From: Mytilus edulis
Lineage: Eukaryota
Assembly: GCF_963676685.1 (NCBI RefSeq)
Contig: NC_092344.1
Coordinates: 120,342,001 to 120,406,000, forward strand
Direction: 5' to 3'
DNA: 64,000 nucleotides
How positions within the stretch are numbered: position 1 is the first letter of the stretch; each line of letters opens with the position of its first letter. This document shows positions 3,233 through 46,200 of this stretch, piece after piece. The notes under the pieces are model-generated. The model was not told the origin of the DNA and did not search any database. It saw nothing but the letters and a program-made list of their open reading frames with translations. A program made the translations under genes and the position numbers.

Positions 3233-3893
3233 TTGCTTTATTATACATCATATACTGTTCAGCACAATTGAAAGTTAGACCATCAATAGTAAACTTAGCT
3301 GGATGCCACTGACTGAATGGCGATTCTTTTCGCCAGAAGAATAAAAAATTCTCAGTCTCTTTTTGTATTCTGTCTCTCCCTTGTCGAGCATGTTCGCTCG
3401 ATTGTCCTCCAGCTCCATGGTCTCGAGATTTGTAATCTGATGAACTGTTCCCAGTAGATCCACTGTTTATGTTGTCACATGGTTTGTCACATGGTTGAGG
3501 TTTTAGTCTTTCTGCATTTGCTTTATTATGTCCACCAGGGAATCTATGAGCATTATGGTATTTATCGGTTCCTGCTCCACTCTGAAGCCTGATGTTGCGT
3601 CGTCTTTCTTGGTTTGTGTTGTTTTCCCTTTTATTGTCGTCTTTAGTAGAATTATTTGAAGAAGGCGTGTCATTTGTGAAATCCAATGTGTCTGGGGTAG
3701 AAAAAGGTATGGGTTGCGAATTCCATGTTCCTCCTGTCCCACTTTCTAAACTGTATGAGGGTATATACTTATCATTGTTGGCTTGTTCCGCTTCTACTGC
3801 TGATACATAGTCTACATTTGCGGTAACAGACAAATCAGAAATATCAGGGTACAAGTTCGACCGTCCATTTGAGATGTCTGAAGATTCTGCCAT
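3233..3893 (-). CDS. NADAR paralog A, large first coding exon (disordered N-terminal arm plus start of NADAR domain); downstream exons lie beyond the left edge
   Basis: ORF ends FFWRKESPFSQWHPAKFTIDGLTFNCAEQYMMYNKA (NADAR/YbiA N-terminal motif), then phase-1 donor GCA A|GTATGT at 3232. Acceptor ttttgtag at 3911-3912. No NADAR exon seen in 1-3232. Confidence 0.85.
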
Positions 3894-4569
3894 ATGTGAT
3901 TACAAGTGTTCTACAAAATATGAAATGATTTCACTTAGCATCGAGATTATCTTGTAGTGGGTTTCTTACTTTAGTTCCCTGTTTGTTTTTTTCATATTGT
4001 AAGTAGACAACTTTAAATAAAGATCTGTTAAAGTGGACTCCATGTATAAATGAAATTTTGCATACATCGGTAATACATATTTAATACAGTTTATACCAAG
4101 CCAAATGACTTGTAAAATCGGGTTAGCTTCACACTAGTTGTAAAATCTTATTTAAAAATTTTAAATGTTCATACAATTCCAGCAATCCAACGATGCTTCA
4201 CTGCTTCACGACAGAAATCCGTATGATAACATTTTTGTAGACCGGTGCTATCAAATTGGTACCTTTCATTATCATTTTTAATTTCAGTATTTCTGTTGAA
4301 AACGTAAGCATCAGATATTAGAATAGAAGGTTCTTAATATATATTGAATACTTCCAATTTATGCTGGTAATTTGTGTAATCATTGCTACATGATGATGGA
4401 TAACATTCTACAGGTGCAAGTAAAGAATAGAAAATTACGAGGATTAATAACAGGTCTCCTCTATCAATAAGCTCTACTTTATTTTATTTTCTACCCTTAA
4501 ACTTAATACATCACATCAAATATTGAGATGGAGACATGAAATATGAACTACATTTGTATGTCTTAATTC

Positions 4570-5815
4570 AACAAGAGTGCACGCGCTGAAATGTCTCGCC
4601 TTCTTCAATAACCATTGATATTATGTTGATGTCAATAATCCTAAATATTTTAGCTTTCCTACAACTATCACATAAACTAAACATGATCCAAGAAAATGAG
4701 GTCAAGGTCAAATAAACCTAAGGAGAAATACATATATATACACCTTACAATCATCCAGTACACTAAATATAGTTGACCTATAATTGCTTATAGTTTCTTA
4801 GAAATAGACTAAACCAAGAAAACTAAACATTGATCAGTGAATCATGAAAATTAGGTCGCGGTCAGATGTTAACTGCCAGACAGACATATACAGCTAACAG
4901 TCCTTCCATACAACAAATATAGTTGACCTATTGCTTATAGTTAAAGAAAAACAAACCAAAACACAAAAACTTAACACTGAGCAATGAACCATGAAAATGA
5001 GGTCAAGGTCAAACAAAACCTGCGAGACTGACGTGTACATCATAAAATATTTCTATACACCAACTATAGTTAACCTGTTGCATATATAGTATTAGAAAAA
5101 ATTACCAGACCTCCAAAACTTAACTTTGACCACTGAACCACGAATATGCGGTTAAGGTCAAATGATACCGGCAAGATGGACATGTACACCTTACAATTTA
5201 AGCAACTTGGTATCAATAGAAGCAGAATTGTCACAGGTTTATTTGTTTATTTGGATATATTTATTTTGTATATCAATTTCATTTTTTCACAAGATAAACA
5301 CAAATATTTTTTTCTGTTCAGAAATTCGCTATCTATTCAACCAAATTAAATTACAAAAAACTATTTTACGAGTTCACATCGAGAGAAAACAAAAACACCT
5401 GAAGATAAAACTATTACAAAATAAACAAACATTCCTTAGACAAGTCTACATCTTTGAAGGCCTTGTTGATCAAAATCCAACCATAAATGCCCTCAAAATA
5501 TTTTTTGGAAAAAAATGTATTTTTATATGAATTAATATATGGCAAAACATGCAGGTGACGAATACTTTTGGCCATGCAGTTATATTGATGACTGAAAAAC
5601 TTTATATTAAACCTTAGACCGAATCTAAACTGTAAACAAAAGTGAGTCCATTTTTCAATGAAAAGAAATATTTTCTAAATGTTGATCATAAAGTTCCTAA
5701 ATTCTATAAATGTGTGATAGATGCTCAGACTGAACCTATATGTCTGCTGTCGATGCCGACGACGGAATCTAGTCTCCTAGGATCGCTTTGTCTTGCTGTC
5801 GCAGGCTCGACATAA
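4570..5815 (+). mobile_element. Degenerate HINE-like element
   Basis: Begins aacaagagtgcacg..tgtctcgcc, has tandem 'aaaatgaggtcaaggtca' subunits, and ends with a hairpin-like tail near 5780-5815. Confidence 0.45.
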
Positions 5816-6561
5816 AGTGATCAGTGACAATTACATCCTTTTTGTAAATTAATTCAAATAATATGGTTCCACTTCAGCTGCCAAAACCTTCCTAAACATA
5901 TTTTAAGTACCATTAAAATCTAGATTGTTTGCCTATATATACTAAATTTACCATTGTATATGCGACTTATATTGTTTTTCATTATTTAGATTATTTAAAT
6001 ATATGCTGTCTAACTCTTGGAAAATCCATAGTTGTTCTCTATCCGGCTATACAAGGGATCATACAAATAATTATAATCATACTTTGGTGGTAAATATCCA
6101 AGTTGTGTGTCCTCAGTGGGGATTGTTGTGTCATTTTGTCGGTCTAGTTACTGACTAGTCTTGGTAAAACCCATACCTTTGTAGGTTATCCATTTATTAC
6201 AGCTCTAGACGGCATGTGTGTTAAGGCCAAACAACATACTGGTGTTTGACTCGACATTCCTACCTTACATTGTAATTTGTATGGACACTTTTAGAATCAT
6301 TGCAAATTGATTGCGTGTATTATACACTTCATATAAAATAAATAAGAAAACAATACCACAGACCGATTTTTCTGAATATAAAGTTAAACACATTTTTGTA
6401 TTGTGGCCTGCTGAAAATGAAAGTGAAACCGAAAGTAGAATTCAAATGGTTATTGTCAATTTACAAATATGTCCAACTTACACTCTTTCCTTAACATATT
6501 TTTTTATAATTATTAAAGTCAAATTTTATAATAATCAAAATCTAACAATAAGTGTACCTAC

Positions 6562-6651
6562 CTTTTCCCTTTATGAACTGAGCTTGATTTGTTTACTTCC
6601 GTTTTAGTATTTCACAAGGCGACTTTCTGAATGTGCAGGCGTTAGCAAACT
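6562..6651. promoter_or_regulatory. Putative compact bidirectional promoter / 5' leader region shared by NADAR A (-) and NADAR B (+)
   Basis: Minus-strand donor AAAAG|GTAGGT at 6561 lies 90 nt from the + strand ATG of B's micro-exon; ETS-like ACTTCCG at ~6595. Confidence 0.4.
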
Positions 6652-9600: not shown

Positions 9601-12600
9601 ATGTTAAGTCAATGATATTTGATATGCAAATTTATTGGCATTTGCAAGTCTTGTTTCTATTGCCGGAGATTATAAAGCACCATTCCCACATCATGGTTCA
9701 TTGACATTGAAACTTTTACATAGTTTACCAATTTAATGTTTGGGTTTAGGTTTGTTTTCAGGGAACGACTTATGATAAGTCAATGATATTATTCGATATT
9801 TCTGCGTTTGTATTAAAATTGGCACATCTCATTTCCACGGAGATTGTTGTACCTTCAATAATAGTTCATTGACTTTGAATATTTGCATAACTTACATGTT
9901 AAAGTATTTCTATTTTAATATCAACATTTTCATTATCAAAATTACAAAAAGGCGAGACTTATTTTTGTGATAACAGTTTATTAATAATTTTTTCAGACTC
10001 GAATGAAGATGATGTCATCAAAGAAAGTCAGAGAACAGAAAGCAAACAACAAAGAAAAATGGATCATTATTTGACAAAGAAAGACAGTACTCAAATAAAT
10101 CGAGAAAAATCTCAAGTTCACAGTGGAGAAGAAACAGACAAAACAAAGGAGAAATATTCAAAGAATGATTTATCAACCCCTGATGTGAAAGACTCAGACA
10201 AGAGGGGGAAAGAGAAAAGTGAAACTGAAAGAAAATCCAAACACAAGAATCCACTTGATACAGAGAGTACAGAAATACCTTCAAAGCGAATGAAAATAGA
10301 CGAATGCAGCACTGTCAAAGACAAAAACCTAATGACGAATTATGTTGAATATGGACCAAAGGAAAAAGATCTAACAAATGAAGAAAATAGAAAGACTTCA
10401 ACAAATGATTTCTCTGTAGGTCATAAAGAATTATCAAAGAAACACAAGAAACGTAAAAAGGAAAAAAAGTCAAAATATTCACATAAGGATAAACATTCAC
10501 ATAAAGATAAACATTCACGCAAACACTCAAGTGAATCTGACAAGAGGTCAAAGAACTCGGACAGTAAGAAAAGAAATTCCCACAGAGTTGGCAGTGAACA
10601 TGAAAATGAGTCAAATCAACAACGACTTGATAAGGAAAAGAAGTCAAAACACACGGACAGTACTGAATCAGAAGATAATTCATCATATCCGCGTAGAGAC
10701 TCAGAAAAGAAGTCCAAACATTCACACAAGGACAGCACTGAATCAGAAGATAATTCACCATATCCCCGTAGAGACTCAGAAAAGAAGTTCAAACATTCAC
10801 ACAAGGACAGCACTGAATCAGAAGATAATTCACTATATCAGCGTAGAGACTCGGAAAAGAAGGCTAGAGATTCACATAATATACCTGAAACAAATGCAAC
10901 TTATCCACAAAGAGACCCCGAAATACACTCAGAGCAGTCCCACAGAAGTTTTTATAGTAGTGATTCAGAACCTTCGCCATCACAAGAAAGTCATTCATAT
11001 AAAGATATAACAGAAAAAACGAGCAACCGTTCAGACAAGAAAACGGAGAAAGGATACGATTTTACAAATAGTGATAGAAAGGAAAGTGGAGGGACACCCA
11101 AAAAATCCAGTCATTGCTCTAAAAATGATGATTATGCATCAAGTAGTAAACGTTATGAAGATAGTAGTAAATGCTCAAGTAGAAGTTACAGCGGAGCAGA
11201 GGGTTCCAGTAAAGACGAAAAATACAGCAAAGAAGACGAGGTGCAGTCACGGAAGCGTAATAGTGAACACCTTGATACAAGCCCATCTATTGATAAAAAA
11301 TATTCAAGTGAGAAAAAGGCACGGCATTCGCTTGGATGTAAAAGTACGCCAGAAACCCCAGAACGACATTTAAAAAAAGAAAAATCAATGTCTCCTAAGA
11401 AATCCGAACAACATGTGAAAAAAGAAAAATCAAAATCTCCTAAGAAATCCGAACAACATGTGAAAAAAGAAAAATCAAAATCTCCTAAGAAATCCGAAAG
11501 GAAGTTCGAAGAAACATTTGAGTCCAGCAATACTGATTTAAAAGAGAGACATATAAAGAACATTGATATACTTATAGAAAGTATGAAGGGAGAAAATAGA
11601 ATCAAGGATTCAGCAGAAAGAATACGGTATTTAGTGGGTACTGGTACACTTATAACAACCAGATATGATTTCGTCTATTTCTTTGGTATGGTGTCACCAT
11701 TTAGTCAGTTCCATTCTGCAAACTTCAAAGTCCAGAATATTATGTATACATGTGCTGAACAGTATATGATGCACCAGAAAGCAGGTTTGTGGAAATTTTC
11801 TTATTTTAGTGCGACGGTATCTGTGCAAAACTCAATCTTTATCATCGAAACATTTATTTTACATAGCATTATAAAAAAACATATGCCTCTCACTTATGAT
11901 ATATCATGAAATACAAGTAACATATTGGTAGTAGCGTTAGATCTCTGTATAAAGCTTCTTATTTTAGAAGGTAGAAGATCTGAACAATCAGTTTTAATAC
12001 AGATACCAAATAGTCTGTGGTACATGGCATAAAAGAGGGACGAAAGATACCAGAGGGACAGTCAAACTCATAAATCGAAAATAAACTGACAACGCCATGG
12101 CTAAAAATGAAAAGGACAAACAGACAAACAATAGTACACATGACACAACATAGAAAAGTAAAGAATAAAAAACACAAACCCCACCAAAAACTAGGGGTGG
12201 TCTCAGATGCTCCGGAATAGTAAGCAGATCCTGCTCCACATGTGGCACCCGTCGTGTTGTTTATGAGATAAAAAATCCGGTAAATAGTCTAATTCGGTAG
12301 GTCACATTCATGAAAGGAAAGGGGCATAAGTCTCGTGTTATTTTTATGATGCATCTGACAACAACTTAAATCTAGACCTTTTTCAGGTGATTGTTTCAGT
12401 TAATGAGTATTAGACTATTGGTTTACTAGTATATTATGTTAAGGGAAATTTTATTGTCCCTCCGTCAGGGTTCATTTGACCTAGACATTTCTCATGATTT
12501 ATGCATTGATCGACATTAAGCAGTCTGTTAGTCGGATGTTGTTAGAAATTTAGGTTAGCTATATTGGATATCTAGAATAGTTGTACGGTGTACATGTTCG

Positions 12601-15600
12601 TCTGACAGGCTTCTGAGACAAGTGCCTGTGATTGGATATCTAGAATAGTTGTACGGTGTACATGTTCGTCTGACAGGCTTCTGAGACAAGTGCCTGTGAT
12701 TGGATATCTAGAATAGTTGTACGGTGTACATGTTCGTCTGACAGGCTTCTGAGACAAGTGCCTGTGATTGGATATCTAGAATAGTTGTACGGTGTACATG
12801 TTCGTCTGACAGGCTTCTGAGACAAGTGCCTGTGATTGGATATCTAGAATAGTTGTACGGTGAACATGCTCGTCTGACAGGCTTCTGAGACAAGTGCCTG
12901 TGATTGGATATCTAGAATAGTTGTACGGTGAACATGCTCGTCTGACAGGCTTCTGAGACAAGTGCCTGTGATTGGATATCTAGAATAGTTGTACGGTGTA
13001 CATGTTCGTCTGACAGGCTTCTGAGACAAGTGCCTGTGATTGGATATCTAGAATAGTTGTACGGTGAACATGCTCGTCTGACAGGCTTCTGAGACAAGTG
13101 CCTGTGATTGGATATCTAGAATAGTTGTACGGTGTACATGTTCGTCTGACAGGCTTCTGAGACAAGTGCCTGTGATTGGATATCTAGAATAGTTGTACGG
13201 TGAACATGTTCGTCTGACAGGCTTCTGAGACAAGTGCCTGTGATTGGATATCTAGAATAGTTGTACGGTGTACATGCTCGTCTGACAGACTTCTGAGACA
13301 AGTGCATGTGATTGGATATCTAGAATAGTTGTACGGTGTACATGCTCGTCTGACAGGCTTCTGAGACAAGTGCCTGTGATTGGATATCTAGAATAGTTGT
13401 ACGGTGAACATGTTCGTCTGACAGGCTTCTGAGACAAGTGCCTGTGATTGGATATCTAGAATAGTTGTACGGTGTACATGCTCGTCTGACAGACTTCTGA
13501 GACAAGTGCATGTGATTGGATATCTAGAATAGTTGTACGGTGTACATGCTCGTCTGACAGGCTTCTGAGACAAGTGCCTGTGATTGGATATCTAGAATAG
13601 TTGTACGGAGTACATGTTCGTCTGACACGCTTCTGAGACAAGTGCCTGTGATTGGATATCTAGAATAGTTGTACGGTGAACATGCTCGTCTGACAGGCTT
13701 CTGAGACAAGTGCCTGTGATTGGATATCTAGAATAGTTGTACGGTGAACATGCTCGTCTGACAGGCTTCTGAGACAAGTGCCTGTGATTGGATATCTAGA
13801 ATAGTTGTACGGTGTACATGTTCGTTTGACAGGATTCTGAGACAAGTGCCTGTGATTGGATATCCATCTTCCATTCTACAGGTGAAATGTGTTCGGTGTT
13901 TAGAATGATTGCAAGATGTACATGAACACTTTGAAACATTGCACTTTAAAGAATCATCTGGAGGCTGTTTGTTCTCTTATTCAATATTTGGGTTTTTTTC
14001 AAAATTTAACAAAAAATTCCAAACTCAATTGGGCAACATTTTTTCTTATTGGAGCAAAACAAAATGAAATTGATTGTCAAAGTTCGTATTCTGTGTAGAT
14101 ATAGATCTAAATTTTTTAAATAGTTTATTTGTACCAGAGATAAGTAAGTATAACTCAAGTGGACTATATTTTTTTATTTTCAGTGCTGTTTGGTGACGAG
14201 GAAATAGCAAAGCAGATCATGGAAGAAACGAAACCTTTGAAAATGAAACGTCTTGGAAGAAAAGTGAAAAATTTTGATGCAGAAAAATGGGGAAATAAAT
14301 GTATAGAGGTGGTAACAAATGGAAATATGGCAAAAGTGAGTGTTTCATGTTTGTACAAAGTAAACAAAACAAAAAAGGGGTAACTAAACTACATAACACT
14401 GTCTAGATAAATAGAAAAAAAGACCAACACTTATCAACAGAAACAAAATACAGGAAACTTAACACCATTGAAAATTAGTTGAACTCGGGTTCTTAAGAAA
14501 GGAAGACTTATGCACCCACGGTAGTGGCATTCGTGGTATGACAAGAAATTAAAATGTATTATCGATGTTATTTAAACAGCATTCAACAATAGATTAAATC
14601 GTATTTCAGCTTTAATTGGATATATGGTCACATTGATAAGTGGAAGGAAGAAGCCCTATTGATTTTGAGGTTACCATGTAAAACATCAAATCATGGGTAC
14701 TTAAGAAAAGACCAAAATGTTTGCTGAAAAGTGTTTTCCGAATACAAAATCAAATACAACATATTTGACTGCAACCTTACTGGAATAGATGGTCATATAT
14801 AATAAATGAATACAGATCCATTAATTATCAAGTTATTTTGGGGTTGTTAAATCAAAATTGGCATATGGGATTGCAACCTTTCTTTTATAAATGGTCCTAT
14901 ATTATGAGAAGAAGCTTCTTTGTCATTTTGTTTTCAATACCTTAGTGGTTAAGGTAAAATTTTACTAGAATTAGACCATCATTTGTTAAGAACAAAAACT
15001 GATTTCAGTTGCTAAATCAAATACTAGTAATATGGATGGGGTTGAAATAACACGACATGTGACACATGTGGAGCAGGATCTGTTTTCCCTTCCGGAGCAC
15101 CTGAGAGCACCCAAGTTTTTGGAGGGGTTTTGTTGCTTATTCTTTAGTTTTCTGTGTTGTGTTTTGTGTACTATTGTGTGTTTGTCTGTTGGTTTTGTTC
15201 CTTTTTAGCCATAGTGTTGTCAGTTTGTTTTTTCGACTTTGAATTTGAATGTCCCTCTAGTATCTTCCGTCTCTCTTGAATAAGAATGAAAACATATACT
15301 TACATATAATGAAAGTTCAAAACTAGTATATAATGAGTAATAGTGAGTGTTAGTGGTACTGATTGACAAAACATTGTAAATGAATTAATGACATCATTTC
15401 CATAAAATTTTATATTTCAGTTCTCTCAGAATTATCTTCTGGAAAAAAGCCTATTTGATACACATCCCAAAATAATGGCGGAAGCTAGTCCACGTGATTG
15501 TTTGTGGGGTATAGGACTTGGTGCTGGTAATGAAAAGGCTTGGAATGTCAGGTCATGGAGAGGAAGGAACCTTCTAGGCTTTACTCTAATGGATGTAAGG

Positions 15601-15636
15601 GAAACGCTAATGAGGCAAAAAGGACATATTAAATAA
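6652..15636 (+). CDS. NADAR paralog B, ~725 aa; exons 6652-6673 (inferred), 9997-11784, 14184-14335, 15421-15636
   Basis: Spliced product contains SPFSQFH..CAEQYMMHQKA|VLFGDEEIA..KRLGRKVKNFD..W..GNMAK|FSQN..EASPRDCLWGIGL..WRGRNLLG..VRETL. All junctions are GT/AG with consistent phase. The 22-nt first exon (MGTKRQR, donor AG|GTACAA) is phase-compatible but less certain. Confidence 0.88.
8160..8988 (+). mobile_element. 3' fragment of a non-LTR retrotransposon (CCHC knuckle, (ATTC)n tail)
   Basis: Disrupted frame reading CTLCNKQSFDIVKHLIIEC followed by ORF 8509-8775; ends aataaagattcattcattcattca. Confidence 0.55.
9181..9575. mobile_element. TTAA-flanked MITE (Kolobok-like)
   Basis: TTAA-ggaagct ... 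gaactccc-TTAA imperfect inverted termini. Confidence 0.4.
12033..12325. repeat. Interspersed repeat (aagagggacgaaagatacc family); inverted copy at ~15050-15277, fragment at ~44728-44767
   Basis: Clear reverse-complement similarity between the copies. Confidence 0.75.
12563..13864. repeat. 68-bp minisatellite, 19 copies, in intron 2 of NADAR B
   Basis: Unit attggatatctagaatagttgtacggtgtacatgttcgtctgacaggcttctgagacaagtgcctgtg, nearly identical copies. Confidence 0.97.
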
Positions 15637-18751: not shown

Positions 18752-19112
18752 GCTCCCTCGCTCTCTTCCTCTATTATCTCATGAATCTCTCGCTCCCTCG
18801 TTCTCGTCTATTATCTCATCTCTCGCTCGCTTGTTCTCGACTATTATCTCATCTCTCGCTCGCTCCCTCGTTCTCTTTTTCTATTCTCTTATCTCTCGCT
18901 CCCTCGTTCTCTTTTTCTATTCTCTCATCTCTCGCTCCCTCGTTCTCTTCCTCTTTAATCTCATCTCTCACTCCCTCGTTATCTTCCTCTTTAATCTCAT
19001 CTATCGCTCCCTCGTTCTCTTCCTCTTTAATCTCATCTATCGCTCCCTCGTTCTCTTCCTCTTTAATCTCATCTCTCGCTCCCTCGTTCTCTTCCTTTAT
19101 TATCTCATCTCT
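18752..19112. repeat. 36/39-bp tandem repeat overlapping the end of NADAR exon C
   Basis: Unit ctcatctctcgctccctcgttctcttcctctttaat, about 10 copies, extending past the stop codon. Confidence 0.9.
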
Positions 19113-19289
19113 CACTTTCGTCAAAGCTTGTCCAAGTAAATTCAGTCCTTTCCATGTTGACCTGTCCCAAGCCAAGGGGTCATTTTTATGAAGTCCAATA
19201 CCCCATATCTTGTCATGTGGACTGGTCTCCACAATAGTTTTAGGATGAGTCTCAACAATATTTGCCTTAAGTACTGCATTCTGAGAGAA
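18849..19289 (-). CDS. NADAR locus C: isolated terminal exon (C-terminal half of the domain plus an EEENEGARDEIK repeat tail)
   Basis: Acceptor tttcag|TTC TCT CAG; FSQNAVLK..VETSPHDKIWGIGL..WKGLNLLGQALTKVRDEI. Matching upstream exons are not found in the sequenced DNA. Confidence 0.75.
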   Translation of the reverse strand, partial: FSQNAVLKANIVETHPKTIVETSPHDKIWGIGLHKNDPLAWDRSTWKGLNLLGQALTKVRDEIIKEENEGARDEIKEEENEGAIDEIKEEENEGAIDEIKEEDNEGVRDEIKEEENEGARDERIEKENEGARDKRIEKENEGASER

Positions 19290-19301
19290 CTGAAACACAA
19301 A

Positions 19302-20074: not shown

Positions 20075-20411
20075 GGTGCACACAAAAGTTTCATTTATGG
20101 TAAACATTCAATTAATATATTCATTTTCTTTCGAAAGAAATAAAACATGCTGTTTGTCAGTATATATAATATATTTAACTAAACCTTTTCTATAGATATT
20201 TTTTATCTACATCTACAAACGTTTTTATAATAACAGAGAATATATACAGAATTACATTTAACCAAATGAAGATATGCATCTCATTTTAATTTTGTGTTGA
20301 TTTTGATTGATTGCGCGAGCGAGTTGGTTTTCCCTCTTTCTGTGGGAGGGATCGGAACATAGAAAAAAATATTTAAATCTTTTCCACATATCTTTTATCA
20401 ACGAATCTAGT

Positions 20412-21785
20412 TTGAGGTTCAACATATGTAAACGATTGTAATGAGGTTATATTAACTCCTACACAAGTTCCGTTATAGCATGTGTATTTGGGTACCCCTG
20501 AAATTTCTCCGGATGAAATATTGTTCACTCCTTGAAATTTAGAATCACGTAGACGGTATAGGGAAAACGGTAGTATTTAATTTTCCCAGCATTAGGTTGG
20601 CCTTTTGTGTACCCAAGGCAGGTGAAGGAAGTCAAATTAGGAGCGCTGTGATTGGATGTAAGGGTACAATATATTTTTTATTTATCTATGAATAACTGCA
20701 GTGTGTATATTTATAATATAAATTTTAAAACCTATTGAAATATTTTCTAGAGAATTATTCGAAAAGACTTGCAAAATTTCATAAATTTGGTGCAAAATGA
20801 CGGTGGGCATGGATAACATAAACAAGCTCCGTTGGAAGTTGGTCATGATACTATTTGGCTTTAATTTTTAAAACAGAGTAATAAAGTACTAACACAACAT
20901 ATAACTGTTTTATCCAGGTTTTTATCTTAAAAAGTGGTAAATTTAGAAAATGTTAACATTGTCGCCAATGGCAGAATAAATAGTACCGTTTTCCCTATAG
21001 AAACATGGTTATCTCTGAACTTTTTTTACTGNNNNNNNNNNNNNNNNNNNNNNNNNNNNNNNNNNNNNNNNNNNNNNNNNNNNNNNNNNNNNNNNNNNNN
21101 NNNNNNNNNNNNNNNNNNNNNNNNNNNNNNNCCCAATTACCAGACGAGAATCGTTCAAAAAATTTCCCCAGAATATCCCTATTTCACTCGCACTCCTCCC
21201 CCATTTCCCCTGGCTTCAAGTCCTCTCATTACCATGATCCTTGTCAATCTCCTCATTTAAATTCAGTGAAAAACTTACAAACCTGTGCAGAAAATCATAC
21301 GTTGTACCAAGAGCATTCGCATTTCTCGAAAATGTATATATATATTGATTTTATGACACCATTCGTTTATATTACTGTCATTACTTCACAACTGTTGTTA
21401 ACCGAAACCGAAACTACAAATGAATATGAATATCAGCCAGCTTGGTTAAACCTCTTTACTCAATATCATTTACTATAAATAGTTCTTTAACTATTATTTT
21501 TTTGAATATTCATGAATATGAAAGATATTTATAGAAATTCAATTATATACCGCGAAATGTATAAAAGGATAAAAGAAACTTTAAAAAGTTCATCACATTT
21601 TGTTTGTGAGCGTATTAAACTAGGTCAATAAATTTAAAGACAAATGACAAATGAATTTCAAAAGTAATAAATTATGAGGCAGGTTGACAAGCCGTTGTCG
21701 CTAGGGTACAGGTTTTATTATTGTACAGCTATATTCCGGTCTACGATTAAGAGGGCATAGCGCATACAAACATGTTGAACCTCAA
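20412..21785. mobile_element. TIR element (ttgaggttcaacat termini) apparently spanning the assembly gap
   Basis: ttgaggttcaacat at 20412 and atgttgaacctcaa at 21772-21785; no TSD evident. Confidence 0.45.
21032..21131. other. Assembly gap (100 N, probably unsized)
   Basis: Run of N. Confidence 1.
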
Positions 21786-32711: not shown

Positions 32712-35700
32712 TTACATGTGTGTTATTTCTGATACTTTAGAAATGTCGACTGCATTTGGATTCGAATTGTCTGTATTATCGGCCTCTGGGATATTCATTT
32801 CAAGAGTTTGGCTATCCCCGGTACTTGTTTTGTCTATCTCACTAGTATCTGCCTCTGAGATAATAGATTCAGGCGTTTGGCTATCCCCGGTAATTGTTTT
32901 GGTTGTATCACTATTATCTGGATTCTCAACTGTTGTGTCTTCCATGTTTGTCTTATTTTCAACACTTGATGTACCATGAATATCAACAGGAAGAGCTTCT
33001 GGATTTGTGGTAAATTCTACTGTTTTATTGTCATCAACTAAATTACTATTTTCCTCTGATTCATCAGCTATATCCGTTATATCTTTTTCTATGGTATTGC
33101 CGCTCTTAATCGTTGTGTTTGGATATTCTTCACTTCGATTCTCCCCTTTCTTTTTTTCTTCTTTCAATTCATCTCTCACTTTGGTCAATGCTTTTCCAAG
33201 TAAATTTTGCCCTCTCCATGTTTTACAATCCCATGCCATAGGGTCATCTTCTTCAAGTCCAATTCCCCAAATTACGTCATATGGACTGGCTTCGACAAGA
33301 GTTTTGGGATAAGTGTCCAGGAGTATTCTTTTAAGGTTTTCATCTTGAGAAAACTTCAAAGAGAAATAGGATTAAGTAAATGAGAATTTTTAGAATATAC
33401 ATTTAGTCACTGTACTAAATGACTAGGCCGAAATTAAAAGCAAACGAATGTCATTCAGAGTTTTGTTTAAAGAATAGACCCTTTTGTGGCTTATAAACAT
33501 GAAAATTATCATTAATAAATACATTTACCAGTATTATATATATATGTTTTTCGATATTTCATATTAATTCCGGTAAATTTGACAACTTCCCTTCTTATGT
33601 TAACAGCTGCTAAATATGTGTCACGTGTCACTGAAGCTTTTTTAAAATATATTGTACCTTTGCTTTATTTCCACGTTCAACAATCGCTGAACAATTTGCT
33701 TCCCATAATTGTAGGTTGAAGTTTCTAACAAGCCTCCCAAATCTCTTTTGTTCTCGAGGGTCGGATTCTCTTAGCACATCATAAGCAATGTCTTCATCTT
33801 CAAAAAGCACTGTAAGATAGGATTAATTAAATAAAATAGTCTAGATCGGTGGGGGTTCTTTCAGAGATAAACATATTTATTATATTCGAAAAATAAGTTC
33901 ACCAGAGCAGACGTTTAAATTGTTTTTCAATATTCGGAATCAAAATAAAGTTTTACTTGCGTTTTTATTTACAAGATTTTTTTGATTATTATTAACTTCA
34001 GTGGTCAACCATAAAAGATTTGGGTTAAAAAAAATGCATATTAAGGAAACTAGTTTGTACGAATCGCTATTATATTACAGTCTTGATTTTTTATCGAAAA
34101 TAAATATGGGGATTGTGAAATACACCTTAAAGAATGTTATGTTTGGCATTTCAATAATCTGGTGTTTTGGCATAGTCTCTGTTTTAACATATTATTTGTT
34201 TTGGCTTGGAACTATTAAGCATGACATCTTGTGAAGACACCTGTTAATTTGATATCTAGATTCTTTTAAACCCAAAGGTGACTGGAAATAGAAGTAATGT
34301 CACTCTTGGTGTTCTTCCGACCGGCAGTAAAACCCTTCCCCAATTGGGCGTCTGTTTGGCTGTGTTGATGTACAAAGTCACAGTAACGTCCCGTCAGAAT
34401 GAGATGTTGAAACGATGCCTAATGTAAATAGAGTCGCACGCTCTCCGCACGTTACGCGCTCTTCATTTGCAACTCTGAAGGTTGCCTGTTGCAAGGCATA
34501 ATTGCTGGCCCTAACCAAAATACCCTCATTATCAAGTGGCAGTCTAAATTTCCCCGAACTTCATCCCGTACAGACTCTATTACAGGACCTACATATTATA
34601 TGTATTGTTTGTTTTTTTTAGTTCTGAACAGGCATAAATTATTTGCCACTGGGGGGGGAGGGGCTGAGGGGGTGTAGGCAAACAACCAGTCAACCATACA
34701 AAAAAAATATAATTCCCTTCCAAAATACCATATTTTATAGACAACAATAGATGAATATTTATATACGTCATACCTGATTAAAAAGTATACTTCTAAAATA
34801 TATTGCACATATGTAGATTTTAAGCTTGCCACAACGAGTCATATTTTGAGAGACCATAGTACATCAGCGATAGAAACTTCACACTTAAGCGAATACCATC
34901 GCAATTTAGCGTCATCATCGCACCTCCGAGTCGTACATATGGGACAATATCCCTAATGCGCCTTGAAATGAGGAACTCAAAAGTCACGTGTAAACAAAAA
35001 ATCTCTGTGCAGTGATATTTGACACATTTCTATGATAAACAAATGACTGAGCTGAACCATTTGTGTTAATTTAGAAAATAGGGGAACACAGAATAAATGT
35101 GTAAAAACTAGGGAGCTATTAAATGTGTTCAAAGTATTAAATTTTCAAAGAACTTATTGTGTTAAAAACAGGATTTTTTACCACCAGGAGCCGCATCACA
35201 AAATGATACTCGGGGTTTGCTAATTTACGGAAAAAGTAAGCTCACTTCGTACCCCGAAAATTTAACCACATATGTGAAAATGTCTCAGCTTCGAAACGAG
35301 CCATTATACATATCCAAGTTAACGATATGGACTGAGCAACAGAAGAAAACGTTACCATTACGGCCTATGGAGAAACTAATACGCATCTTGACCCATATAA
35401 ACATGATACGAAAAAAAATAATATACATGTACATGATATAATGTAGCTAGACTTACTTGCTTTGCTATGCATCATGTATTGCTCTGCAGAATTAAACGTG
35501 ATCCCATCGATTGTGAAGTCACATAAATGCCACTGACTGAAGGGAGAATGTGATTTCCAAAAGAATTCATATTGTTCTAAAGCCTTATTTTTTAACTCAA
35601 TTTCTTTTTCTGACAAATAATTGTAGTCGTCATTATAACTATCCAACATATTCTCTTTGAATCTGTTTTTTCTATTTAGTGTTGGTTTTTGTACATCTAC

Positions 35701-36288
35701 TTCGTGATTCACTGACAAGTCTTTGGCTTCTTCTGATAAATTCTTATCATCCATGGATTCAGTTTCACACTTGTCCGTTGATGAATTCTCTTTGAATCTA
35801 GTTTTTCTATCTATGGGCTTCTGTTCTTTGTTGTCGTCATCTGCATTCTGTTCCTTTGAGGAAAGTTCGGTTTGTTGGGTTTTATTCTGTTCATTTCCAT
35901 TTTGCGCGCTTTCTATAACCTCGTTATAGTTTTTATTGTCATGTAATCCTTGTGTGTCAGTGTGTAGATTCTCTGTCTCTCCAGGCTGTGTGGTGTTATT
36001 TAGGTTTAGTTGAGCCTCATCGCAAATAGCTTCGGTGTTATTCAACTTTTCTTGAGATGTATTAGCGATGGTATCGTACGGTTCGGTTTCCATCTTATTT
36101 TGCTCTGGTATATTTTCTGTAACACCAATGTTCGTGATTTCCGATATATTTTCAGTACCGACAACTTGCATGGTTTCTAACTTATTTTCTGGTCTTGGTA
36201 CATCAAATATCTCTGGTGCGGCTGCTTGTTCACATGTATCGGAATGTGCAACATCGTGGCCACTCGAATCTGCTTTACATTCGGACAT
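32712..36288 (-). CDS. NADAR paralog E, ~541 aa; exons 36288-35457, 33809-33658, 33353-32712
   Basis: FFWKSHSPFSQWH..SAEQYMMHSKA|MLFEDEDIA..DPREQKRFGRLVRNF..GNKAK|FSQD..EASPYDVIWGIGL..WRGQNLLGKALTKVRDEL plus acidic tail; GT/AG junctions; 152-nt middle exon. Confidence 0.9.
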
Positions 36289-39200: not shown

Positions 39201-39291
39201 TGCTCTTTTCACAAAATCTTACGAGTAAACAATTAAATCTTAAGATTTGTGAAATTTATCACTTTTTCTCAGGTATATTGTCTATTTTATC

Positions 39292-42200
39292 ATGACTGGT
39301 TTCATGTGGTTCAAAGAATTAGTTGTTAACGGAACGAACCGTTTTCTCATTTTGTGTGTTAATTTCATTGGTTTCGTGTGGTTCAAAGAATTGATTGTTG
39401 ACGGAACGAACCGTTTTCTCATTTTGTGTGTTAATTTCATTGTTTTCGTGTGGTTCAAAGAATTGATTGTTGACGGAACGAACCATTTTCTCATTTTGTG
39501 TGTTAATTTCATTGGTTTCGCGTGGTTCAAAGAATTAGTTGATAACGGAACGAACCGTTTTCTCATTTTGTGTGTTAATTTCATTGGTTTCGTGTGGTTC
39601 AAAGAATTGGTTGATAACGGAACGAACCGTTTTCTCATTGTGTGTGTTAATTTCATTGGTTTCGTGTGGTTCAAAGAATTGGTTGATAACGGAACGAACT
39701 GTTTTCTCATTGTGTGTGTTAATTTCATTGGTTTCGTGTGGTTCAAAGAATTAGTTGATAACGGAACGAACCGTTTTCTCATTTTGTGTGTTAATTTCAT
39801 TGGTTTCGTGTGGTTCAAAGAATTGATTGATAACGGAACGAACCGTTTTCTCATTTTGTGTGTTAATTTCATTGGTTTCGTGTGGTTCAAAGAATTGATT
39901 GTTAACGGAACGAACCGTTTTCTCATTTTGTGTGTTAATTTCATTGGTTTCGCGTGGTTCAAAAAATTAGTTGATAACGGAACGAACCGTTTTCTCATTG
40001 TGTGTGTTAATTTCATTGGTTTCGTGTGGTTCAAAGAATTGGTTGATAACGGAACGAACCGTTTTCTCATTTTGTGTGTTAATTTCATTGGTTTCGTGTG
40101 GTTCAAAGAATTAGTTGATAACGGAACGAACCGTTTTCTCATTGTGTGTGTTAATTTCATTGGTTTCGTGTGGTTCAAAGAATTGATTGTTAACGGAACG
40201 AACCGTTTTCTCATTTTGTGTGTTAATTTCATTGGTTTCGTGTGGTTCAAAGAATTGGTTGATAACGGAACGGACCGTTTTCTCATTTTGTGTGTTAATT
40301 TCATTGGTTTCATGTGGTTCAAAGAATTAGTTGATAACGGAACGAACCGTTTTCTCATTTTGTGTGTTAATTTCATTTGTTTCGTGTGGTTCAAAGAATT
40401 GATTGATAACGGAACGAACCGTTTTCTCATTTTGTGTGTTAATTTCATTGGTTTCGTGTGGTTCAAAGAATTGGTTGATAACGGAACGAACCGTTTTCTC
40501 ATTTTGTGTGTTAATTTCATTGGTTTCGTGTGGTTCAAAGAATTAGTTGATAACGGAACGAACCGTTTTCTCATTGTGTGTGTTAATTTCATTGGTTTCG
40601 TGTGGTTCAAAGAATTGGTTGATAACGGAACGAACCGTTTTCTCATTTTGTGTGTTAATTTCATTGGTTTCGTGTGGTTCAAAGAATTAGTTGATAACGG
40701 AACGAACCGTTTTCTCATTTTGTGTGTTAATTTCATTGGTTTCGTGTGGTTCAAAGAATTGGTTGATAACGGAACGAACCGTTTTCTCATTTTGTGTGTT
40801 AATTTCATTGGTTTCGTGTGGTTCAAAGAATTAGTTGATAACGGAACGAACCGTTTTCTCATTGTGTGTGTTAATTTCATTGGTTTCGTGTGGTTCAAAG
40901 AATTAGTTGATAACGGAACGAACCGTTTTCTCATTTTGTGTGTTAATTTCATTGGTTTCGTGTGGTTCAAAGAATTGATTGTTAACGGAACGAACCGTTT
41001 TCTCATTTTGTGTGTTAATTTCATTGGTTTCGTGTGGTTCAAAGAATTGATTGTTAACGGAACGAACCGTTTTCTCATTTTGTGTGTTAATTTCATTGGT
41101 TAAGTGTGGTTCAAAGATTTGGTTGATAACGGAACGAACCGTTTTCTCATTTTGTGTGTAAATTTCATTGGTTTCGTGTGGTTCAAAGAATTGATTGTTA
41201 ACGGAACGAACCGTTTTCTCATTTTGTGTGTTAATTTCATTGGTTTCGTGTGGTTCAAAGAATTGGTTGATAACGGAACGAACCGTTTTCTCATTTTGTG
41301 TGTTAATTTCATTGGTTTCGTGTGGTTCAAAGAATTGATTGTTGACGGAACGAACCGTTTTCTCATTTTGTGTGTTAATTTCATTGGTTTCGTGTGGTTC
41401 AAAGAATTAGTTGATAACGGAACGAACCGTTTTCTCATTTTGTGTGTTAATTTCATTGGTTTCGTGTGGTTCAAAGAATTGATTGTTAACGGAACGAACC
41501 GTTTTCTCATTGTGTGTGTTAATTTCATTGGTTTCGTGTGGTTCAAAGAATTGGTTGATAACGGAACGAACCGTTTTCTCATTTTGTGTGTTAATTTCAT
41601 TGGTTTCGTGTGGTTCAAAGAATTAGTTGATAACGGAACGAACCGTTTTCTCATTTTGTGTGTTAATTTCATTGGTTTCGTGTGGTTCAAAGAATTGGTT
41701 GATAACGGAACGAACCGTTTTCTCATTTTGTGTGTTAATTTCATTGGTTTCGTGTGGTTCAAAGAATTAGTTGATAACGGAACGAACCGTTTTCTCATTG
41801 TGTGTGTTAATTTCATTGGTTTCGTGTGGTTCAAAGAATTAGTTGATAACGGAACGAACCGTTTTCTCATTTTGTGTGTTAATTTCATTGGTTTCGTGTG
41901 GTTCAAAGAATTGATTGTTAACGGAACGAACCGTTTTCTCATTTTGTGTGTTAATTTCATTGGTTTCGTGTGGTTTAAAGAATTGATTGTTAACGGAACG
42001 AACCGTTTTCTCATTTTGTGTGTTAATTTCATTGGTTTCGTGTGGTTCAAAGAATTGGTTGATAACGGAATGAACCGTTTTCTCATTTTGTGTGTTAATT
42101 TCATTGGTTAAGTGTGGTTCAAAGATTTGGTTGATAACGGAACGAACCGTTTTCTCATTTTATGTGTTAATTTCATTGGTTTTGTGTGGTTCAAAGAATT

Positions 42201-43490
42201 GATTGTTAACGGAACGAACCGTTTTCTCATTTTGTGTGTTAATTTCATTGGTTTCGTGTGGTTCAAAGAATTGGTTGATAACGGAACGAACCGTTTTCTC
42301 ATTTTGTGTGTTAATTTCATTGGTTTCGTGTGGTTCAAAGAATTGATTGTTGACGGAACGAACCGTTTTCTCATTTTGTGTGTTAATTTCATTGGTTTCG
42401 TGTGGTTCAAAGAATTAGTTGATAACGGAACGAACCGTTTTCTCATTTTGTGTGTTAATTTCATTGGTTTCGTGTGGTTCAAAGAATTGATTGTTAACGG
42501 AACGAACCGTTTTCTCATTTTGTGTGTTAATTTCATTGGTTTCGTGTGGTTCAAAGAATTAGTTGTTGACGGAACGAACCGTTTTCTCATTGTGTGTGTT
42601 AATTTCATTGGTTTCGTGTGGTTCAAAGAATTAGTTGTTGACGGAACGAACCGTTTTCTCATTTTGTGTGTTAATTTCATTGGTTTCGTGTGGTTCAAAG
42701 AATTAGTTGATAACGGAACGAACCGTTTTCTCATTTTGTGTGTTAATTTCATTGGTTTCGTGTGGTTCAAAGAATTAGTTGATAACGGAACGAACCGTTT
42801 TCTCATTTTGTGTGGTAATTTCATTGGTTTCGTGTGGTTCAAAGAATTGGTTGATAACGGAACGAACTGTTTTCTCATTTTGTGTGTTAATTTCATTGGT
42901 TTCGTGTGGTTCAAAGAATTGATTGTTGACCGAACGAACCGTTTTCTCATTGTGTGTGTTAATTTCATTGGTTTCATGTGGTTTAAAGAATTGGTTGATA
43001 ACGGAACGAACCGTTTTCTCATTTTGTGTGTTAATTTCATTTGTTTCGTGTGGTTCAAAGATTTGGTTGATAACGGAACGAACCGTTTTCTCATTTTGTG
43101 TGTTAATTTCATTGGTTTCGTGTGGTTCAAAGAATTAGTTGATAACGGAACGAACCGTTTTCTCATTTTGTGTGTTAATTTCATTGGTTTCGTGTGGTTC
43201 AAAGAATTAGTTGATAACGGAACGAACCGTTTTCTCATTTTGTGTGTTAATTTCATTGGTTTCGTGTGGTTCAAAGAATTGGTTGATAACGGAACGAACT
43301 GTTTTCTCATTTTGTGTGTTAATTTCATTGGTTTCGTGTGGTTCAAAGATTTGGTTGATAACGGAACGAACCGTTTTCTCATTTTGTGTGTTAATTTCAT
43401 TGGTTTCGTGTGGTTCAAAGAATTGGTTGATAACGGAACGAACTGTTTTCTCATTTTGTGTGTTAATTTCATTGGTTTCGCGTGGTTAAC
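39292..43490. repeat. 72-bp satellite, ~58 copies, between NADAR F and E
   Basis: Unit tggtttcgtgtggttcaaagaatt(a/g)gttgataacggaacgaaccgttttctcattttgtgtgttaatttcat; degenerate copies at both flanks. Confidence 0.97.
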
Positions 43491-44161
43491 AGTATTGATT
43501 GCTAACGGCCGGTGGGAATATTTGTTTCATGTGTGTCATATTCATTGGTTGCACTGATGTGTTAAGCTTTACAAATTGGAACCATGTTCTAAGATAGCCT
43601 TTCTGGTATGCACAAAGTGATGTTAGCTCTCGGGATTATACAATTGAAAAATCTGATTTCACGAATATCCATCTGTTAAAAGAGACAAGTTTTTTCAGGT
43701 TTTTTTTTATAGTTTTCTTCTGTAATTATTCCAACATCTTGTTTATTCGTGATAAGAGTTCCTGGGTAATTCTTAGTTGTTCTTGGTTAAGAGTTTAGAG
43801 ACGTTGGTGCTAATTTTATCAACATTTAGTTCAAACAGGTTGTAGAAGTTAAGAAAAATCCGTATTAGTATAAACATTCTAACAGAATTCTATCGTTACA
43901 AAGTCAGATGAGGTCTAGATTAGAAAAATCCATGTCGCGAAAACCAATGCAACTGCTTCAAGATACACAAACATTATTTTTTTTTAATTCTAGAATAAGA
44001 ATATCATTTTATTTACAAATTGTATTGTGAATGTATAATTCAAGCACTACATTTTTAAATATGAGAACAAATGCATTTGCAGACAATAAATATAGGAATT
44101 TGTACAATGAAATCGACTCCTAAAATTGTGAAATTAGCGTCTTATTCTCTTATTTTCTTCC

Positions 44162-46200
44162 TTATTCTTTTTGTTTTGCTGTTTTTTTTTCTGCTTTCTT
44201 TTTCTGTCGTTTTACCTTCTCTTTCTTTTCCACAAACCTATCCCTGATTTTTGTCAGGGCATGTCCAAGTAAGTTCTTTCCTTTCCAAGTTTCTTTATTC
44301 AAAGCTCTAGGGTCGTCGGCTGATAGCCCTATACCCCATATCGTATCAAATGGGCTGGCCTCAGCTAGAGTTTTGGGAAACGTTTTTAAGATAGTTTTCA
44401 TAAGGTCTTCATTCTGTTCGAACTGTAATAAAAAAAGAAAATGTATAACGCTGTTATTTAAATTTTAAAAATTACTATCAAAGTAAGGACGACGAGATGT
44501 TTTATAACTTGAATAGTACACAAGATAAAGGAAATCCACAAATTCCGGGATAAAGGTAGTTCCCAAAATTCTTGATACTAGTAACTAGAATATTATAGTA
44601 TTAAAACAGGATAACATGAATATAAAAATAGACTGTACTCGATCATTTAAAAAGAGTTTGTGAAAATAATGTATTGGTTCATGCACCTTAATTAACTTGC
44701 ACATAAATATTTTTCTTCATATGCAGCAGAGTTTGACTGTCCCTTTGGTATCGTTCGTCCCTCTTTTAATCATGTTTGTTAGTATATTTAACCAGATCAC
44801 TAAAACAATAAACTATATTACCTTGGCTTTGTTCCCACGAATAACTATATCCATACAGTTGTCATCCCATGTGCTCTGGTCGAAGTTTTTCACCTGACGG
44901 CCCAGTCTCTTATGTTCACGGGGTTCGTGTTCTGCTAGAATCTCAGATGCTGTTTCTTTATCTTTGAACAATTCTGAAAAAAATGTTTTTATTGATCAGT
45001 TTAATTCATTTAATTTGCAAAAATCATATATACATACTAGTAGCAAGGAGGTTATATGAGCTCATATAACCTCCTTGCTAGTAGTAATAACCTTAATTTC
45101 TTTCGTGTGATTTTCACTGTTTTAATTTTTTTTAAATTGCACTTGTGATCTACATCAAAACAAATTACAAGATGTACTTACGAGAAGACGAAAATCTTCT
45201 ATAGAAAGTTTGTTCATCTGTAGGAACATGTCTGATAAAAGTTTTAAAAATTCAGAATATTATACTGTTGGCATCTGCCAATATTAATTGATGAACGTGT
45301 GGGTAAAATAGTTGTATTGGTTTATGTTTGTAACTTACTTGCTTTACTATACATCATGAATTGTTCCGTGCAATTAAACGTGATTCCATCGACTGTGAAG
45401 TTACTTAGATACCACTGACTGTACGGAGAATGTGATTTCCAAAAGAATTCAAATTCTCTGTCATTCGCCGTGTCATATCTTCTTGATGTCTGGTTGTCTT
45501 TACTGGTTGGCCAGCTATGACGTTTTAATGTTCTCGAACTGGACGAGTTTCTATTGTTGTCTGACAAGTTGTAGTCACGTCTTTCTATCCTCTTAGTTGG
45601 CTTTATGTCTGTAATAGGTGACCAACTGTCGCGTCCTACAGAACTTCTTGTTGTATGTCTGTCTTTACTAGATGTCCAGCTGTCACGTTTGTTAGAACTT
45701 CTACGTGTGTCGTTGTATTCACTTGCTGACCAGCTGTCACCTCTGTCTGATCTTTTACGTGACCGACCATCTTTGCTGGTTGGCCAGCTACCATATCTTT
45801 CTGGACTTCTAAGTGCTTGTTTGGCTTTATGTGTTGACCTTGTGGTATCTGTTTCTATATCCCTAGTGTTATGGTTGTTTCTAATGGATGAGTAGCTGTC
45901 GTGTCTTTTATGTGTTTGACTGTCTTCATTGCTTGACCAGCTGTCGCGTCTTTTTATACTTTTGAATGACTGAATGTCTACATAAGCAGACCAACTGTTG
46001 GATCTTTCTGTTCTCCCTGAGTTTTGACTGTCTTCAAAGCCTGCCCAGCTGTTTCGTCCTTCTGACCTTTCATGTCTTTGATGTCGGATCTGTTCCTTTT
46101 GGTCTTTCCTATGCCTTTTGGCCGGATTATAAACCTCGACAGAATATGAGTTTTCTCGTTTCCCTGTGGTATTATGCTTTTTCCCTTCATGTGGTTCCAT
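44162..46200 (-). CDS. NADAR paralog F, ~424 aa; exons 46200-45339, 44973-44822, 44422-44162
   Basis: FFWKSHSPYSQWY..CTEQFMMYSKA|KLFKDKETA..EPREHKRLGRQVKNFD..GNKAK|FEQN..EASPFDTIWGIGL..WKGKNLLGHALTKIRD plus basic tail; GT/AG junctions; 152-nt middle exon. Confidence 0.9.

Follow-up and report, generated by a model that had tools for sequence, protein, structure and literature searches.

The stretch of DNA analysed here, referred to below as the window, covers 64,000 nucleotides of the genome of Mytilus edulis (RefSeq assembly GCF_963676685.1, contig NC_092344.1, positions 120,342,001 to 120,406,000 of the forward strand). It holds a large part of a tandem cluster of intron-containing genes that code for NADAR (YbiA-like) domains. 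Exons of the NADAR family (PF08719) are present in six loci, named A to F, as established by a motif scan and a profile search; the motif scan places A, C, D, E and F on the minus strand and B on the plus strand. All six loci reported in the initial annotation of this DNA lie where it had placed them, but the cluster itself is larger. A genome-wide NADAR search of the 1.37-Gb assembly, followed by inspection of the 80 kb upstream of the window, yields nine loci spread over ~119 kb, six in the window and three (Z1, Z2 and Z3) upstream of it. The cluster sits inside a contig of 126 Mb (126,317,657 bp). It is a real, expressed expansion of a family of known enzyme type, expression being seen for D and E. 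The NADAR exons of the window are listed below, with lengths in amino acids (aa) or nucleotides (nt) and positions counted from the first letter of the window.

3233-3893, minus strand: A exon 1, with a 178-aa disordered arm and the first NADAR motif (profile positions 1-50, E-value 1.6e-6; donor GCA A/GTATGT, phase 1).
10059-11784, plus strand: B exon 1, with a 533-aa arm rich in K, S and E that contains 75-bp and 45-bp coding repeats, and the first NADAR motif.
14184-14335, plus strand: B exon 2, 152 nt (NADAR profile 50-102, E-value 8.8e-13).
15421-15636, plus strand: B exon 3 with the stop codon (NADAR profile 100-162, E-value 3.9e-18).
18849-19292, minus strand: C last exon, with the C-terminal third of NADAR and a tail made of a 36-bp x10 repeat (profile 98-162, E-value 5.1e-19).
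24329-24689, minus strand: D exon 3; the frame of the assembly stops at 24459 and the RNA form reads on (profile match and RNA contigs).
24989-25140, minus strand: D exon 2, 152 nt (NADAR profile 50-100, E-value 2.4e-11; both flanking joints confirmed by RNA).
25509-26376, minus strand: D exon 1, with a 247-aa arm rich in N and K, and the first NADAR motif (profile match, open model).
32712-33353, minus strand: E exon 3, with the C-terminal third of NADAR and a 148-aa acidic tail (profile 99-163, E-value 2.8e-22).
33658-33809, minus strand: E exon 2, 152 nt (profile match, open model).
35457-36288, minus strand: E exon 1, with a 235-aa acidic arm and the first NADAR motif (profile match, open model).
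44162-44422, minus strand: F exon 3 with the stop codon (profile match, open model).
44822-44973, minus strand: F exon 2, 152 nt (profile match, open model).
45339-46200, minus strand: F exon 1, with a 245-aa arm rich in S and R that contains seven [RK]xDSW-type repeats, and the first NADAR motif (profile match).

The assignment to NADAR, made from motifs in the initial annotation, is reproduced by PF08719 matches exon by exon in every locus. First exons cover profile positions 1-50 (22-29 bits), middle exons 50-101 (38-50 bits) and last exons 99-163 (67-80 bits); the gathering cut-off of the family is 35.1 bits, which exons 2 and 3 pass alone in every locus. Every splice site has the canonical GT..AG form. 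The end of exon 1 falls one base past the codons for ..KA (phase 1), exon 2 ends after ..AK (phase 0) and exon 3 begins with F[SE]Q. B, D, E and F had been described as intact genes with a common phase-1 intron, a 152-nt second exon and a phase-0 intron. Their splice sites agree with this description, exon 2 is exactly 152 nt long in the four loci, and the joined models are open, with lengths of 697 aa (B), 416 aa (D), 541 aa (E) and 424 aa (F). The F model is letter for letter the database protein P0005, which RefSeq names 'peptidyl-prolyl cis-trans isomerase G-like [Mytilus edulis]'. The first exon of B matches the NADAR profile (positions 10-49, E-value 1.5e-4) only if the search is restricted to its last 61 codons. 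Much of intron 1 of B is occupied by a 68-bp x19 tandem array (97% matches, window 12563-13864).

The phase-1 donor noticed earlier at locus A is present, and the gene is also intact. The open model, of 344 aa, is completed by two exons that precede the window start, exon 2 (155 nt) by 237-391 bases and exon 3 by 3379-3597 bases. Z2 and Z3, also upstream of the window, are intact genes coding for 240 aa each, with the same two intron positions and an exon 2 of 161 nt in Z2 and 152 nt in Z3. The cluster has in total seven open three-exon models. Z1 is a 3' fragment that copies Z2, being 92-93% identical to the last exon of that gene and to part of the intron. In Z3 the end of exon 2 and the 5' splice site are duplicated in intron 2 just 3' of the donor (~15.3-15.5 kb before the window).

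Locus C is represented by its last exon, which matches residues 241-384 of the intact 421-aa M. trossulus protein P0011 with 79% identity, the core part being near-identical. A six-frame profile search found no remnant of C exons 1 and 2 in the readable DNA between C and D. One segment of this region is not readable:

21032-21131, strandless: assembly gap, which touches no recognised exon; the open reading frames (ORFs) listed across it include N letters.

The gap is found 1.74 kb upstream of exon 3 of C, in the sense of C; D ends over 3 kb away from it. It is a candidate site for C exons 1 and 2 because its position is where the missing exons are expected. For C this leaves two options: a complete gene whose 5' exons fall within the gap, or a gene that is truncated in the individual sequenced.

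The introns of D are seen as the joints 24689>24989 and 25140>25509 (CT..AC when read on the plus strand, hence GT..AG in the direction of the gene) in contigs of two runs from different studies, whose kind was guessed as RNA; depth is 15-45 in the exons and low in the introns. The raw RNA-seq reads of one run contain 24689>24989 in three reads and 25140>25509 in one, and the latter joint is present in X1, X2 and X24. The D transcript extends unspliced to 26874, forming a 5' untranslated region (UTR), and past 23900, forming a 3' UTR. With UTRs of its own, D is therefore a separate gene. It is present in 20 runs from 12 studies (at least half of the sampled words). At the junction between exons 2 and 3 of E, 12 raw RNA reads pass from an exon-2 end into 33353-33324. 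They read the last 36 nt of D exon 2 and then the first 30 nt of E exon 3 without mismatch, and their other side fits the interior of E exon 2. Since the 12 reads join into E exon 3, E is expressed at the RNA level and its intron 2 is spliced out in accord with the prediction. Spliced reads are found in this way for both introns of D and for intron 2 of E, in agreement with the gene structure deduced in the initial annotation.

The assembled D gene has one extra base at window 24480 when compared to the RNA contigs of two runs, which cuts 43 aa off the C-terminal tail. The contigs without this base place the stop codon of D at 24329-24331 and code for a 459-aa form matching the tail of the M. 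galloprovincialis ortholog P0001. The extra base is an allele or an assembly error. The region of the exon-2 acceptor of D is repetitive:

25134-25285, strandless: perfect 49-bp x3.1 repeat, which includes the D exon-2 acceptor and the first 7 nt of the exon, repeated in intron 1.

The repeat provides D with three identical 3' splice sites 49 bp apart, of which RNA uses only the acceptor at 25140. One RNA contig of another individual lacks two units of this repeat.

Searches with whole proteins used as queries database proteins such as P0005 (identical to F) and P0001 (ortholog of D). Against PF08719 they score 173.9 bits over profile positions 1-162 of 163 (P0005) and 177.1 bits (P0001). TIGR02464 is matched with 153-161 bits, 159.5 bits for P0005, for a cut-off of 73.7. 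The F sequence (P0005) matches PDB entry 8bau with an E-value of 1e-17. In a Foldseek search with the F model the sole significant PDB matches are 8bau (E-value 3e-11, template modelling (TM) score 0.73) and YbiA (2b3w; E-value 5e-8, TM 0.77). The cluster models carry no fusion to RibA or RibD.

Roles in ADP-ribose binding and catalysis were assigned to E43, K50 and further residues in the NADAR protein of Phytophthora nicotianae (PMC11543638). Equivalents of E43, K50, K75, G78, R79, W89, E125, D130 and W133 are present in all window copies. The E-x6-K pair (E43/K50 in P. nicotianae, E88/K95 in the E. coli C7 NADAR) is found in A, B, D, E, F, Z2 and Z3. The E125 position distinguishes NADAR types, being Glu in YbiA, Asp in BC4488-type and His in phage-type proteins; the Glu characteristic of the YbiA type is found in A, B, C, D, E, F, Z1 and Z2. 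The conservation of these residues suggests that the cluster proteins are catalytically competent.

The core is preceded in each intact paralog by an arm of 73-533 aa in which 67-80% of the residues are polar or disorder-promoting and 11-23% are hydrophobic. The net charge of the arms ranges from -27 (E) to +26 (B). A disordered C-terminal tail is found also in C, D and E. In the AlphaFold2 model of F, built on a 60-sequence alignment, residues 1-245 are devoid of secondary structure and have a predicted local distance difference test score (pLDDT) below 50; the core reaches pLDDT 95-99 and is followed by a helical K/E-rich tail. Local alignments of arm against arm score no higher than shuffled controls except for A versus Z3 (z = 6.7). 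The earlier view that the arms are unalignable between paralogs thus holds relative to these controls but not for the A and Z3 pair. Core identity, alignment scores, AlphaFold2 disorder and the kept residues all support the description of one conserved core joined to different disordered arms.

Tandem repeats are found within the coding sequence of the B arm (75 bp and 45 bp), the F arm (seven [RK]xDSW-type units) and the C tail (36 bp). The number of arm repeats varies between species and the M. trossulus F protein has a 66-residue insertion. Because repeats vary in number, the arms diverge past recognition while sharing an exon with a conserved motif. A search among 1.84 billion representatives gave no relative of the B arm, only the NADAR segment of B being matched. 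No signal peptide is apparent at any N-terminus, as judged by inspection of the sequences. Basic clusters resembling a nuclear localisation signal (NLS) occur in B, F and Z2.

Introns occupy the same positions, in the same phases, in every copy, the dispersed pseudogene copies described below included. The family therefore arose by DNA-level tandem duplication, as was proposed in the initial annotation. Core identity between paralogs is 42-70%, and copies so different are not haplotype artefacts. The synonymous substitution rate (dS) is saturated or undefined for most paralog pairs. For D-E and E-F, the pairs where dS is estimable, the ratio of nonsynonymous to synonymous rates (dN/dS) is 0.14-0.20, far from the value near 1 that would have spoken against the initial proposal. 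The cores are under purifying selection.

Orthologs occur in four other Mytilus species and in five Mytilus assemblies, and are paralog-specific, each with its own arm. Those of D are found in M. galloprovincialis, with 96% identity in the arm and 99% in the core, in M. californianus (arm 66%, core 90%) and in M. coruscus (arm 65%, core 92%), those of F in M. trossulus and M. coruscus (arm 67%, core 92% in the latter), those of C in M. trossulus, M. californianus and M. coruscus, and those of Z2 in five species. The distribution of orthologs across Mytilus species implies that the duplications predate the radiation of the species sampled. The expansion had been called lineage-specific; tandem duplication stands, but the saturated dS and the orthologs of D, F, C and Z2 make it old rather than recent. 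Trees group the Mytilus copies as (A, Z3, Z2) and (F, C-type, E, D), with B apart. Their deep nodes, including the position of bacterial sequences, lack resolution. A search with P0007, a short NADAR protein, gave almost only unnamed metagenome proteins, and a search of the ESM Atlas gave generic NADAR clusters only.

Arms and cores evolve at different paces. Ortholog arms are 65-67% identical versus 90-92% for the cores, the arms changing about four times faster, with indels and repeat slippage. When D is compared to other individuals, 5/5 differences in the core are synonymous, and nonsynonymous changes make up 6/7 of those in the arm and tail (Fisher p = 0.015 in this small sample).

The genome-wide search also disclosed NADAR copies away from the cluster. 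L016/L025 and L030 (C11) and L027 (C10) are of the cluster type, with the same exon borders and with stop codons; they are dispersed pseudogenes derived from DNA-level duplication. L027 is E-like, with 68% identity. A second group consists of L011, L012 and L013 (C1:99.02 Mb, C4:28.63 Mb and C6:56.79 Mb), together with L006 and L010. These copies are dispersed and 98-99% mutually identical, and they have a 144-aa NADAR ORF in which, as in phage NADARs, His occupies the Glu125 position. This ORF adjoins, or is fused with, an ORF for an SGNH/GDSL-like esterase, and the group looks like a mobile element that carries a NADAR domain. L017, L018 and L019 (C3:52.92 Mb, C2:96.14 Mb and C5:26.56 Mb) feature a divergent NADAR domain inside open frames longer than 1000 aa that consist of SRVVSPSRDSVRSRMPVP-type tandem repeats.

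The other ORFs of the window have no Pfam match. KIF2, named in the initial annotation as a neighbour of the cluster, could not be confirmed, no kinesin motifs being found in the 144 kb examined around the cluster. A satellite lies between E and F:

39297-43508, strandless: 72-bp x58 satellite, 95% matches.

The satellite is stop-free in several frames on both strands, which produces artefact ORFs of 300-600 aa (39282-43557) and spurious Pfam matches. The long ORFs at 39282-43557 were rejected as genes for this reason. Downstream of the cluster, on the minus strand, degenerate transposon-like ORFs that have no Pfam match are found at window 55900-58900 and 61173-61478; one of them is LINE-tail-like.

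The activity of related proteins offers a guide to the role of the cluster. YbiA-type, phage, DarT-linked, stand-alone and sponge NADARs act in vitro on modified guanine and/or cytosine, from which they release ADP-ribose (PMC11125620, PMC12945103). The cluster proteins are probably intracellular erasers of base-linked ADP-ribose whose arms would modulate their location or partners. Their cores would act as N-glycosidases that take ADP-ribose off nucleobases (guanine-N2, cytosine) of DNA or RNA, an activity that in vitro assays have reported for members of the four NADAR families. The arms would set where, or with which partners, each paralog acts, and might in this sense be targeting arms, a role proposed from their sequences. 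A likely purpose would be defence against toxins that ADP-ribosylate nucleic acids and that a filter feeder encounters.

Several observations weigh against such a role. The formal name of TIGR02464 is riboflavin biosynthesis intermediates N-glycosidase. Searches made without a positive control gave no genome match to PF22596 (Scabin-like), PF01375 (Enterotoxin_a) or PF14487 (DarT), families that could write the modification. The arms of D, E, A and Z3 have no basic cluster. Changes in the arms seem close to neutral, and the exact sequence of an arm may therefore matter little for its function. The position of the subfamily Glu125 is taken by Leu in Z3, a locus outside the window. Transcript evidence is limited to D and E, the loci examined in the reads.

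A narrower version of this proposal, which we regard as doubtful, is that the cluster forms an innate-immune battery of nucleic-acid de-ADP-ribosylases in which each arm would send its eraser to a different compartment, condensate or partner. Such a battery would guard DNA and RNA against pierisin-, ScARP- or DarT-like genotoxins of bacteria or other bivalves. It would be an animal counterpart of the bacterial NADAR antitoxins, in keeping with irg-1 of C. elegans and with the ladybird NADARs cited in PMC12945103.

A different substrate is envisaged if the cluster proteins are small-molecule N-glycosidases of the YbiA kind, which would leave nucleic acids untouched and clear riboflavin-pathway or similar ribosylamino compounds acquired with food or from microbes. 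The scores against TIGR02464, an equivalog_domain model passed at 153-161 bits versus 73.7, the fold match to E. coli YbiA (2b3w) and the RefSeq name of the Z2 product, 'N-glycosidase Npun_R5314-like', point in this direction. However, PF00925 and PF00885, the families of GTP cyclohydrolase II and lumazine synthase, have no match in the genome, while controls match in 10 and 14 of 14 genomes. With the riboflavin pathway absent from the genome, a role in it is unlikely and no endogenous substrate is expected. In addition, at least seven paralogs with long disordered arms, some with NLS-like clusters, suit metabolic housekeeping poorly, and YbiA-type NADARs also hydrolyse ADP-ribosylated guanine and cytidine in vitro (PMC11125620, PMC12945103). 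We consider this explanation rather unlikely.

The erasers might also provide self-immunity against a CARP-1-like DNA ADP-ribosylating toxin of the mussel itself, in a eukaryotic counterpart of the DarT1-NADAR pair. CARP-1 homologues are reported mainly from Bivalvia and a protective role was proposed for metazoan NADARs (PMC12945103); NADARs were also put forward as erasers of the CARP-1 linkage (PMC12945103, PMC11543638). The genome gave no match to PF22596, PF01375 or PF14487, negatives that are weak, as the search went exon by exon and no control genome was matched. No ADP-ribosyltransferase (ART) gene is present in the 144 kb around the cluster. The sole ADPrib_exo_Tox (PF03496) match in the genome, on C10, was examined as a possible writer and discarded: it is an ecto-ART-type gene (PF01129) on another chromosome, unrelated to the cluster. 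On balance self-immunity of this kind appears quite improbable. The intronless 227-aa ORF on C10 that matches NAD:arginine ADP-ribosyltransferase (L039, C10:20159529-20159882; PF01129, E-value 4.9e-13) is of the ecto-ART type and not pierisin-type.

It is very improbable that most copies are drifting duplicates without distinct function whose arms are low-complexity junk made by slippage. Drift would account for the near-neutral look of arm substitutions, for the repeats that expand and contract between species, for the fragments Z1 and C in the assembly and for the dispersed pseudogene copies on C10 and C11. It is at odds with seven open three-exon models that persist after saturating divergence, with the dN/dS of 0.14-0.20 in the cores, with paralog-specific orthologs that keep their own arms in M. 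coruscus, M. californianus and M. trossulus, and with the expression of D and E. An artefactual origin of the array, through assembly, haplotypes or contaminating bacteria, to which the gap inside the array, the 92-93% identity of Z1 and the 3' part of Z2, and Bacteroidota as nearest named non-Mytilus relatives in one search might point, is already refuted for the window copies by cores only 42-70% identical with unrelated arms, RNA-confirmed GT-AG introns within a 126-Mb contig, the presence of D in 20 runs from 12 studies and the orthologs in five Mytilus assemblies.

Intracellular erasure of base-linked ADP-ribose is the reading that we favour for the cluster. The initial annotation knew of no such cluster characterised in an animal. 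A targeted search of the available literature on Mytilus or bivalve NADAR proteins and on the RefSeq product names returned no paper on the cluster or on a NADAR family expansion in animals. Nevertheless, the cluster genes are already annotated in RefSeq and UniProt under misleading names, molluscs are listed among NADAR carriers and a sponge NADAR was assayed (PMC11125620, PMC12945103). Low-complexity sequence in the arms is what gave rise to the artefactual RefSeq names 'peptidyl-prolyl cis-trans isomerase G-like' and 'protein starmaker-like'. The mollusc entries comprise a snail, a quahog and a vent snail but not Mytilus (PMC11125620). The physiological role of animal NADAR hydrolases is an acknowledged open question (PMC11125620). 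The cluster supplies a natural series of at least seven expressed or expressible paralogs with one intact core and different arms, including Z3, which is naturally without the subfamily Glu. This series suits testing of the in vivo erasure of base-linked ADP-ribose, of the response to infection and of the contribution of the arms.

Among characterised proteins, the NADAR of Phytophthora nicotianae var. parasitica (8bau; Schuller et al. 2023, PMC11543638) is the best match of the cluster in sequence (E-value 1e-17) and fold (TM 0.73). It is a eukaryotic, stand-alone guanine-ADP-ribose hydrolase, and nine of its residues that contact ADP-ribose are common to the mussel copies, whereas its D86 and R93 contacts are not kept. 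It consists of a single 189-aa domain without disordered arms, and no tandem gene family has been described for it. E. coli YbiA, represented by TIGR02464, shares with the mussel copies the subfamily (~160 bits), the fold (2b3w, TM 0.77) and the defining Glu. YbiA is part of a bacterial operon and acts on riboflavin intermediates, while the mussel is devoid of the pathway and its genes are spliced, multi-copy and fused to disordered regions.

The DarT1-associated NADAR antitoxins have in common with the mussel copies the fold, the E/K pair and the lysine equivalent to K115 (K75 position). They differ in the catalytic residue, which is an Asp in DarT1-linked NADARs (D171 in E. coli C7; PMC11543638) and the YbiA-type Glu in the mussel. 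At the D171 region the mussel copies read [AV]-E-[AT]-S-P-x-D, with no catalytic Asp two residues before the Glu position. In contrast to the DarT-NADAR toxin-antitoxin systems, the mussel genes do not form toxin-antitoxin operons and no DarT (PF14487) was found adjacent to them or elsewhere in the genome, in a search where no control genome matched.

Animal NADARs provide further terms of comparison. IRG-1 of C. elegans (C07G3.2), the product of an infection response gene, is listed as a DUF1768 (NADAR) protein induced by Pseudomonas aeruginosa PA14 (PMC3527274). Its relation to the cluster is a lead only, RefSeq naming the M. galloprovincialis ortholog of Z2 'protein irg-1-like'. The NADAR of the sponge Amphimedon queenslandica is an animal enzyme that removes G- and C-linked ADP-ribose in vitro, for which protection against bacterial genotoxins was proposed (PMC12945103, PMC11125620); neither of these two papers on metazoan NADARs describes the Mytilus cluster or the exon structure and arms of its genes. 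Multiple NADAR units of the cluster type are found in a protein of the abalone Haliotis rufescens, with three domains separated by charged disordered linkers, and in a protein of the amphioxus Branchiostoma, with two domains. The three abalone domains group together in the tree, likewise the two of amphioxus, and this within-species grouping suggests independent local duplications. The abalone and amphioxus units are annotated as parts of one polypeptide, whereas those of the mussel are separate genes, each with its own start and stop codons.

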